Part shown: positions 51,798 through 52,168 of the stretch, in pieces
How the letters are laid out: every line of letters starts with the position of its first letter
How positions within the stretch are numbered: position 1 is the stretch's first letter
Source of the DNA: Bigelowiella natans CCMP2755
Taxonomy: Eukaryota > Protista > Cercozoa
Direction of reading: 5' to 3'
NCBI GenBank assembly: GCA_000320545.1
Contig: ADNK01000247.1
Coordinates: forward strand, 21,300-85,299
DNA length: 64,000 nt
Translations under genes and position numbers: made by a program
The notes under the pieces: model-generated
Told to the model about the DNA's origin: nothing
The model's database searches: none
What the model saw: the letters and a program-made list of their open reading frames with translations, nothing else

Positions 51798-51868
51798 CTT
51801 CCCGTCGTTCAATGGTAGGACCCTCGGTTGTAGCCCGAGAGATGTTGGTTCGATTCCAACCGGGGAGA
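51798..51868 (+). tRNA. tRNA-Tyr(GTA), intronless, canonical cloverleaf
   Basis: Acceptor CTTCCCG/CGGGGAG (C1:G72, A73); D stem GTTC/GGAC; anticodon stem CTCGG/CCGAG with loop TT-GTA-GC; T arm GTTGG-TTCGATT-CCAAC. Confidence 0.88.
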
Positions 51869-51878
51869 GCAACATCAA

Positions 51879-51948
51879 AGTCGTGCAAGTGGTCTCTTGA
51901 CCCCCTTCTAATAAGCGGGGAGAGGAAGTTCAATTCTTCCCACGACTA
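51879..51948 (+). tRNA. Non-canonical tRNA-Ile(AAT)
   Basis: Acceptor AGTCGTG/CACGACT + A; D arm CAAG-TGGTCT-CTTG directly abutting the acceptor; anticodon stem CCCCTT/GCGGGG with loop CT-AAT-AA; variable AGA; T arm GGAAG-TTCAATT-CTTCC. Confidence 0.75.
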
Positions 51949-52007
51949 TTCTTATCAGGTATTCGATGTTTGTGGAGACATTGGTTCAAATCCGAACAAA
52001 GTCGCAT

Positions 52008-52077
52008 GGCCTCACCGGCGGAACTGGCGCTGTGGCTTCGAACAACGGTTGGGAGGGTTTAACTCCCTCTGGGGCTT
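52008..52077 (+). tRNA. Non-canonical tRNA-Arg(TCG)
   Basis: Acceptor GGCCTCA/TGGGGCT; D arm CCGG-CGGAA-CTGG abutting the acceptor; anticodon stem CTGTGG/CAACGG with loop CT-TCG-AA; T arm GAGGG-TTTAACT-CCCTC. Confidence 0.65.
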
Positions 52078-52086
52078 CTTCAGTGG

Positions 52087-52156
52087 AGTCGTGCAAGTGG
52101 TCTCTTGACCCCCGTCTTATAAGCGGGGAGAGGAAGTTCAATTCTTCCCACGACTA
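52087..52156 (+). tRNA. Non-canonical tRNA-Ile(TAT), intronless
   Basis: Matches 51879-51948 at 68 of 70 nt; anticodon stem CCCCGT/GCGGGG fully paired, loop CT-TAT-AA. Confidence 0.78.
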
Positions 52157-52162
52157 GTCACA

Positions 52163-52168
52163 TTTTTT
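52163..52168 (+). terminator. Putative Pol III terminator (T6)
   Basis: First run of four or more T after the start of the tRNA array, 6 nt past the last tRNA. Confidence 0.65.

Follow-up and report, generated by a model that had tools for sequence, protein, structure and literature searches.

Candidate compact tRNA genes with isoleucine and arginine anticodons in a nuclear tRNA cluster of Bigelowiella natans

A 64,000-nucleotide (nt) stretch of contig ADNK01000247.1 of Bigelowiella natans CCMP2755 (hereafter the window, with positions counted from its first base) contains a head-to-tail cluster of transfer RNA (tRNA) genes on the plus strand at 51798–52168. Three 70-nt elements of this cluster, named E1, E2 and E3, depart from the ordinary cloverleaf and raise the question of whether they are genes of a compact tRNA architecture, relics of such genes, or derivatives of something else. 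We consider it probable that they are compact-architecture tRNA genes, with E3 as an intact tRNA-Ile(UAU), E1 as its near-copy with an AAU anticodon and E2 as a damaged tRNA-Arg(UCG). It is highly probable that the three are true members of two compact families, and the chances that E3 yields a working tRNA are, judged from its sequence, about even.

Geometry of the three elements

E1 (51879–51948), E2 (52008–52077) and E3 (52087–52156), all on the plus strand, share one layout. A 7-bp acceptor stem abuts, with no connector, a 4-bp D stem whose 5–6-nt loop contains GG. It is followed by a 2-nt hinge, a 6-bp anticodon stem with a 7-nt loop carrying T33 and A37, a variable loop of 3–4 nt, a 5-bp T stem with a 7-nt T loop, and the discriminator. 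Absent are the two-base connector at positions 8–9, the 5-bp anticodon stem and the single base 26 of canonical tRNAs. The acceptor-stem and T-stem lengths, the TTC T loop, T33 with a purine at 37, and the GG of the D loop are shared with ordinary tRNAs, except that E2 has TTT for TTC. The two-base connector and the five-pair anticodon stem are regarded as near-universal outside tRNAPyl, tRNASec-like species and mitochondria (PMC7609411).

A strict scanner was written for this geometry (7 / 0 / 4 / loop 4–7 / 4 / 2 / 6 / 7 / 6 / 3–5 / 5 / 7 / 5 / 7), with T33, a purine at 37 and a TTC T loop as further demands. On both strands of the 64-kb window, only E1 and E3 match it with at most one mismatch, and E2 is accepted after relaxation of the T-loop requirement. 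No match was obtained in 692 kb of shuffled viral loci. Folding E3 to its minimum free energy (MFE) gives precisely the compact cloverleaf (−27.0 kcal/mol, z −3.4); every one of its 22 pairs forms, and it keeps G18G19, the TTC T loop and discriminator A73. The scanner parse and this fold agree in every item with the geometry given in the initial annotation, which had proposed an undescribed, structurally selected class of nucleus-encoded tRNAs for Ile and Arg.

General tRNA finders respond poorly to this layout. ARAGORN calls none of the three elements, and the only gene it reports in the cluster is a tRNA-Tyr. With the Rfam tRNA model (RF00005), only E3 reaches the gathering score (32.1 versus 29 bits), and does so by deletion of the D-arm region, while E1 and E2 are unreported at E values up to 10.

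In a molecule of this shape, the lost connector bases and the short D and variable loops would be offset by the sixth anticodon-stem pair and the 2-nt hinge, so that the L shape would persist as in tRNAPyl and mitochondrial tRNASer(UCN), and G18G19 with the T loop would keep the elbow contact. E3 would decode AUA as tRNA-Ile(UAU). Together with an A34 version, UAU forms the usual pair of eukaryotic Ile anticodons.

Relatives in phage arrays, bacteria and an environmental genome

Relatives of E2 were found in phages. A pattern specifying the D arm and anticodon loop alone of the Arg design was scanned against IMG/VR and yielded 79 loci, in which a covariance model built from the B. natans copies alone (R2) found 63 full-length elements of 69–71 nt at 45–69 bits. 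Among the 63 unique matches to the pattern, 46 had at most one mismatch in the 18 pairs left unspecified by the pattern; the rest had at least 3, mostly 10–12, as chance would give. Every scanner match of the Arg design with at most one mismatch (69 of 69) carries an Arg anticodon. The 61 unique folded phage members have widely different stems, always an Arg anticodon, and mostly a YGGAN D loop; CCA is encoded in 48 of them. They sit in arrays of 12–35 tRNAs with bacterial features such as long-arm Tyr and G34 anticodons. An example from a cultured phage is tRNA-Arg(ccg) ALICE_167 of Mycobacterium phage Alice (55.5 bits), which is annotated as an ordinary tRNA-Arg. When records of cultured phages were searched by BLAST, neither the clusters nor single compact genes gave a match; a longer array query returned only generic tRNA matches, though it pointed to phage Alice.

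E2 itself has the features of this family, namely a CGGAA D loop with A directly after GG, and the anticodon TCG. It shares the geometry, the CCRG-YGGAW-CYGG D arm, the A after GG and an Arg anticodon with the compact Arg genes of phages and of two other B. natans clusters (C1676 and C274, described below), the family as a whole using ACG, CCG, UCU, UCG and CCU. The A after GG would lie where the identity element A20 of bacterial arginyl-tRNA synthetase is placed. Unlike most phage members, which encode CCA and have G or A as the discriminator, the B. natans compact Arg genes lack CCA and have T there. The R2 score of E2 (91 bits) is high by construction because E2 is in the training set, and independent support comes from the phage matches. 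Neither E1 nor E3 is detected by R2; what the Ile and Arg elements have in common is therefore geometry and not sequence, as the initial annotation had it.

The phage arrays contain further short tRNAs. Trp, Cys and Gln tRNAs with the anticodon at 30–31 were seen at L066 (2775–2846, 3218–3289 and 5498–5568), L073:2723–2792, L048:10571–10642 and L118:867–939, and compaction in phages may reach beyond Arg and CAU. ARAGORN also calls a 95–96-nt tRNA-Ile(tat) in three arrays with compact Arg genes (L079:70–164, L108:368–462 and L094:7653–7748), which may contain an intron or be a false call.

The Ile elements appear to be part of a second compact family beside Arg, which is new here. Compact tRNAs with a CAT anticodon made up 10 of the 84 scanner matches in the loci that the Arg pattern had fetched, so both kinds come from the same phage arrays. 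A CAT-specific pattern yielded 37 further viral loci; of 27 unique matches, 23 adopt the fold with no more than one mismatch among the pairs that the pattern left free. Another pattern, GTCTCATAAGC...GTTC, was rejected as unspecific, having matched mostly canonical initiator-like phage tRNAs. The CAT pattern was found in 10 of 185,579 bacterial and archaeal species genomes, with matches in five Lentzea, an Actinocrispum, a Pseudonocardiales metagenome-assembled genome (MAG), a Pirellulaceae MAG, an Allochromatium contig, in which neither ARAGORN nor the model R3 described below detects a tRNA, and two tiny flavobacterial contigs. The two compact families, Arg and CAU/UAU, are thus found together in phage tRNA arrays as well as in a few bacteria. 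The genes of Lentzea, Pseudonocardiales and Actinocrispum may represent phage-type genes kept stably by bacteria or left over from prophages. Their neighbours are tRNA-Gln(ctg) in four Lentzea loci (L281, L286, L288 and L289) and in the Pseudonocardiales MAG (L285), with tRNA-Cys after the compact gene in L286, and tRNA-Asn in Actinocrispum (L282).

Alignment of 21 distinct phage CAT members revealed double changes in 21 of the 22 pairs. Covariation extends to the first pair of the D stem, directly next to the acceptor stem, and to pair six of the anticodon stem, its outermost. Since these members were picked by a scanner that requires the fold, the percentage of paired positions is inflated, while the covariation is not. 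A covariance model built from the phage compact CAT sequences only (R3) scored E3 at 65.7 bits (E 2e-18) and E1 at 57.6 bits (E 9e-16). Held-out bacterial members scored 56–85 bits, which places E1 and E3 inside the family range. The same model gave 31 bits for the canonical Ile(AAT) gene of B. natans, 40–42 bits for canonical Ile(TAT) genes of giant-virus MAGs and 33–41 bits for the compact Arg genes. In the held-out set (E1, E3, one environmental and nine bacterial members), 98.9% of positions are paired and 18 of 22 pairs covary, compared with 29–47% paired for slid partners. The geometry is thus held through compensatory base changes, and the sequences support the earlier claim that selection has acted on structure.

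E1 and E3 resemble the phage CAU family in the TGGT-type D loop, the AC hinge, the U·G pair that closes the CUNAUAA loop, the AGA variable loop and A73. What sets them apart is TAT or AAT in place of CAT, two extra D-loop bases and the lack of an encoded CCA. One environmental member also has TAT. We lean towards lysidine-dependent tRNA-Ile2 rather than elongator Met as the identity of the phage CAU members, and in one phage lineage the compact gene adjoins tRNA-Ile(GAT). The anticodon arm GT-CTNATAA-GC is common to E3 and the canonical Ile genes of B. natans, which would fit recognition by the isoleucine system of the host.

The environmental member is a 69-nt compact tRNA(TAT) on a metagenome contig (R3 57.4 bits), with the same AC hinge, AGA variable loop and A73 and with compensatory changes in its stems. 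It lies between tRNA-Leu(TAA) and a tRNA-Asn whose D arm we take to be eukaryote-looking, and none of the three genes encodes CCA. The locus is present in two independent assemblies (L313:1014–1308 and L314:1846–2140), in the second of which it lies within 3.1 kb of tightly packed, mostly orphan open reading frames (ORFs). Among the ORFs of the environmental contig, two have no relatives and a third has a weak Exo_endo_phos match. Its gene density, together with tRNAs that lack CCA, would be in keeping with either a large virus that infects eukaryotes or a eukaryotic genome of very compact form. Searching viral contigs with compact-TAT patterns turned up canonical Ile(TAT) genes alone, including several in giant-virus MAGs. 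No compact gene was seen in the giant-virus MAG contigs, which leaves a giant-virus origin without support. One giant-virus MAG (L275, 3106–6217) has a tight cluster of 17 tRNA genes, all canonical in geometry, including a 71-nt tRNA-Tyr with the C1-G72 pair and AATGGTA D loop of the tRNA-Tyr in the window.

Structurally conserved homologues therefore exist in phages, a few bacteria and an environmental contig, and no viral sequence matches exactly, the highest identity being 73–76%. The best identities between B. natans compact genes and phage members are 70–76%, close to the 67% among the B. natans Arg paralogues themselves, which argues against a recent transfer. A broader reading, which we advance tentatively and regard as possible rather than likely, is that compact tRNAs are a third widespread architecture for ordinary amino acids, shared by phage arrays, a few bacteria, a gene-dense uncultured genome whose tRNAs lack CCA, and the nucleus of a eukaryote, and that in the latter two the AUA-reading member was refitted from CAU to UAU or AAU. 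If so, array tRNAs would have moved between viruses or bacteria and a eukaryote and then been functionally domesticated. A CAU anticodon needs the bacterial lysidine enzyme, while UAU and AAU would be usable by eukaryotic decoding.

Genomic copies, expression and competing explanations

The assembly that was searched comprises 91.4 Mb in 3736 contigs. Copies were counted by exact pattern scans; the first-look filter of a genome-wide R3 search loses real members, E1 and E3 included. An ungapped alignment model (R1), with the Arg D and anticodon arms one column off, served for copy finding only and was replaced by R2 and R3. The scans gave 2 compact Ile genes, which are E1 and E3, and 6 compact Arg genes with 4 anticodons, all for arginine (ACG and TCG twice each, CCT and TCT once). 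A tRNA-derived short interspersed nuclear element (SINE) would have a high copy number and an unrelated body and tail. These copy numbers are not SINE-like, and BLAST gives no dispersed copies.

Besides E2, the compact Arg genes lie in two clusters. C1676, identified by BLAST, reads Gln – compact Arg(TCG) – Asp – Gln – compact Arg(TCT) – Leu with spacers of 0–9 nt, and C274, obtained by model searches, reads canonical Asp – compact Arg(ACG) – compact Arg(CCT) – Asp remnant – compact Arg(ACG). Folds are perfect in E3, both Arg copies of C1676 and one of C274, and the other two of the three C274 copies contain a mismatch. The Arg types of C1676 and C274 differ by six double compensatory changes with no disruption. 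A 55-nt fragment in C1072 (L042:1501–1555) that resembles the 3′ part of a compact Arg gene (R2 35.8 bits) is probably a dead copy; it adjoins a tandem repeat of some 120 nt in which CTTCCTTCC motifs abound.

The copies in the window differ in integrity. E1 is identical to E3 at 68 of 70 positions, with unrelated flanks, and one of the two differences breaks an anticodon-stem pair (T × C mismatch). E2 has 96% and 94% BLAST identity to its two sister copies in C1676. Three changes set it apart from them: a D-stem A-T pair has become G·T, the anticodon stem has a G × A mismatch, and C56 of the T loop is T. All three weaken the fold or a conserved loop base, and E2 is probably an impaired copy of a compact tRNA-Arg.

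The cluster opens with the canonical tRNA-Tyr(GTA) (51798–51868, plus strand, 71 nt), which is called by ARAGORN and scores 56.7 bits with the Rfam tRNA model. Its C1-G72 pair, short variable loop and lack of an encoded CCA are of eukaryotic or archaeal style. E1 follows after 10 nt and is succeeded by a decayed tRNA-Asp remnant (51949–52004, plus strand), recognized by pairwise alignment and called as a tRNA by neither ARAGORN nor Rfam. Its 3′ half (51964–52004) is alignable to the intact Asp gene of C1676, and its 5′ half is deleted or diverged. E2 and E3 are separated by 9 nt, the cluster genes being 3–10 nt apart, and a T6 run (52163–52168, plus strand) six bases past E3 is likely to be the single RNA polymerase III (Pol III) terminator.

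Such packing is common in B. natans, where many tRNA clusters have spacers of 0–15 nt. Six tight clusters (window 51798–52156, L002:1424–1898, L008:1181–1573, L014:1304–1837, L024:1344–1978 and L030:1240–1572), about 2.7 kb in total, contain no internal run of four or more T, where about 12 would be expected from composition, although tRNA bodies seldom contain such runs. In five of the six, a T5–T6 run lies 0–7 nt past the last gene, and internal genes have no terminator of their own. This is the signature expected of polycistronic Pol III units. A canonical tRNA (Tyr, Gln or Asp) leads all three clusters with compact genes, and the B-box region of the compact genes is intact. Each cluster probably yields one Pol III precursor from the promoter of its canonical leader, from which RNase P and RNase Z would release the single tRNAs. 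CCA would be added after processing because none is encoded. Two tight clusters of contig C3482 with the order Met-Pro-X-Thr-Pro contain as X a 75-nt tRNA (L008:1345–1419 and L024:1500–1574, both minus strand) that ARAGORN reads as Cys(ACA), an anticodon not normally used. Its anticodon stem is mismatched, and it may be a drifting or re-assigned cluster member.

Perfect folds in E3, three Arg copies and the environmental relative, anticodon changes that stay within one amino acid, the retention of identity and elbow elements, and the near-identity of E1 and E3 (68 of 70 positions) between unrelated flanks favour use of the compact genes. Several observations weigh against such use or against the preferred reading as a whole. 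The window cluster is decaying, with a dead Asp gene, three harmful changes in E2 and the mismatch in E1. The divergence between E1 and E3 (2/70) is no lower than that of E2 from its sisters (3/70), and recent duplication or gene conversion, without selection, could explain their similarity. The compensatory differences between the Arg paralogues may predate their arrival in the genome. The A-box region of the compact genes is shortened by two bases. Canonical single-copy genes are present for Ile(TAT), Ile(AAT), Arg(TCT) and Arg(ACG), so that the compact set is redundant for all four anticodons checked and nothing requires it. The phage CAU genes could be Ile2, with lysidine, or Met, and their arrays also hold initiator-like and elongator-like CAT genes. 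As the GT-CTNATAA-GC arm occurs in canonical Ile genes too, part of the match between E3 and the phage family could be convergence on Ile identity. The decay of the window cluster and the presence of canonical genes lend weight to the idea that the elements are real members of the compact families that are now unused, an acquired or duplicated cluster drifting to pseudogenes, as do the mismatch in two of the three C274 Arg copies, the low copy number and the Rfam scores at or below threshold. Against such relics stand the perfect folds of E3, both C1676 copies and one C274 copy, the confinement of anticodon changes to Arg or to Ile, the intact terminator arrangement, and the environmental compact tRNA(TAT), which indicates that the design is maintained elsewhere. 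We regard this explanation as unlikely, though it deserves serious consideration.

The other explanations are much less probable. If E1–E3 had arisen as independent deletion derivatives of the canonical Ile and Arg genes of B. natans, with the likeness to phage genes due to convergence, the shared GT-CTNATAA-GC arm of E3 and the canonical Ile genes would be accounted for. However, E3 bears no relation to those genes in its acceptor, D and T arms, its AC hinge, AGA variable loop, A73 and TGGT-type D loop are those of the phage and environmental members, and compact forms of Arg and Ile are found together here, just as in phage arrays. We therefore consider this origin very improbable. An organelle link is given still less credence. 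The compact genes would then have been copied into the nucleus from the mitochondrion, plastid or nucleomorph, or they would supply an organelle by import, a role raised in the initial annotation. In its favour, the compact designs have their closest relatives in phages and bacteria, and the mitochondrial genome attributed to B. natans (HQ840955) is reported to encode trnR(tcg) and trnR(tct) as well as three trnM(cat), which are the same anticodon classes (PMC4757882). Precisely because the mitochondrion has these trnR and trnM genes of its own, import is unneeded; the nucleus, for its part, has canonical Ile and Arg genes, and an organelle role is unsupported. Moreover, ACG, CCT and AAT are not mitochondrial anticodons. 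BLAST of the assembly, which has no COX1-bearing (mitochondrial) contig, shows no other copy. The surroundings in the window are ordinary nuclear DNA, with an intron-split aminotransferase gene, a PHD finger and microsatellites; no viral hallmark was found in 10 of the 12 window ORFs of at least 180 aa, and the neighbouring tRNA genes have the C1-G72 Tyr, A34 anticodons and no encoded CCA. A role outside translation, such as tRNA-like punctuation for the processing of a Pol III transcript or a supply of small RNAs from within it, would suit the redundant coding capacity and the tight packing in a probable polycistron. It would leave unexplained T33, the purine at 37 and sensible anticodons limited to one amino acid per family, as well as the A after GG in the Arg genes and the retained G18G19 and TTC, which are features of charging and ribosome use beyond what cleavage alone demands. 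To this role we assign the smallest probability.

Comparison with known systems

No description of a compact architecture for Arg, Ile or Met, or in phages, was found in the literature examined on non-canonical tRNAs, novel cloverleaf structures and tRNA arrays, which is not proof of novelty. The proposal of an undescribed nucleus-encoded class accordingly stands in that Ile and Arg forms lack a description, and falls in that the class is not specific to the nucleus but occurs in phage arrays and a few bacteria. Genes of compact layout carry ordinary Arg and Ile (or Met) anticodons; the layout covaries across dozens of phage arrays and has nuclear copies with eukaryote-style anticodons. If the genes are active, standard synthetases, processing enzymes, elongation factors and ribosomes of bacteria and eukaryotes accept the compact shape. 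Such acceptance would bear on tRNA identity rules, on gene finders that score compact genes at or below threshold, and on orthogonal tRNA design. It would also bear on why phages carry tRNAs; speculatively, a changed shape could evade tRNA-targeting defences. The tight clusters with one terminal T run are, in addition, a clear test case for polycistronic Pol III transcription in a protist.

Dimeric or polycistronic tRNA genes exist in eukaryotes, an example being the yeast tRNAArg-tRNAAsp tandem. The B. natans clusters are like it in close spacing and one downstream T run, and would be like it in one shared promoter region and separation of the products by processing. They differ in having 4–7 genes and non-canonical members, and co-transcription is here deduced from the arrangement of the genes.

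The resemblance to tRNAPyl and mammalian mitochondrial tRNASer(UCN) that had been noted for E1–E3 holds at the level of geometry (PMC7609411). The tRNAPyl of the Methanomethylophilus alvus type has no connector, a 6-bp anticodon stem and a 3-nt variable loop, and tRNAPyl functions on ribosomes despite its compaction (PMC7609411). It has a CUA anticodon and is charged by PylRS, and the forms of Methanosarcina barkeri and Desulfitobacterium hafniense are without G18G19 and TΨC (PMC7609411). E1–E3, in contrast, keep G18G19, with TTC in E1 and E3, and have Ile or Arg anticodons and a 2-nt hinge, so that the likeness is one of geometry only. Mammalian mitochondrial tRNASer(UCN) (type I) has a short connector, a small D loop, a 6-bp anticodon stem and a 3-nt variable loop, and it keeps G18G19 and TΨC (PMC7609411). 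It retains one connector base and is a mitochondrially encoded serine tRNA from a single lineage-specific gene, whereas E1–E3 have no connector, are nuclear, carry Ile or Arg anticodons and belong to families that extend across phages, bacteria and a nucleus. Differing in anticodon, identity and compartment, and from tRNAPyl also in loop sequences, E1–E3 belong to neither of the two.

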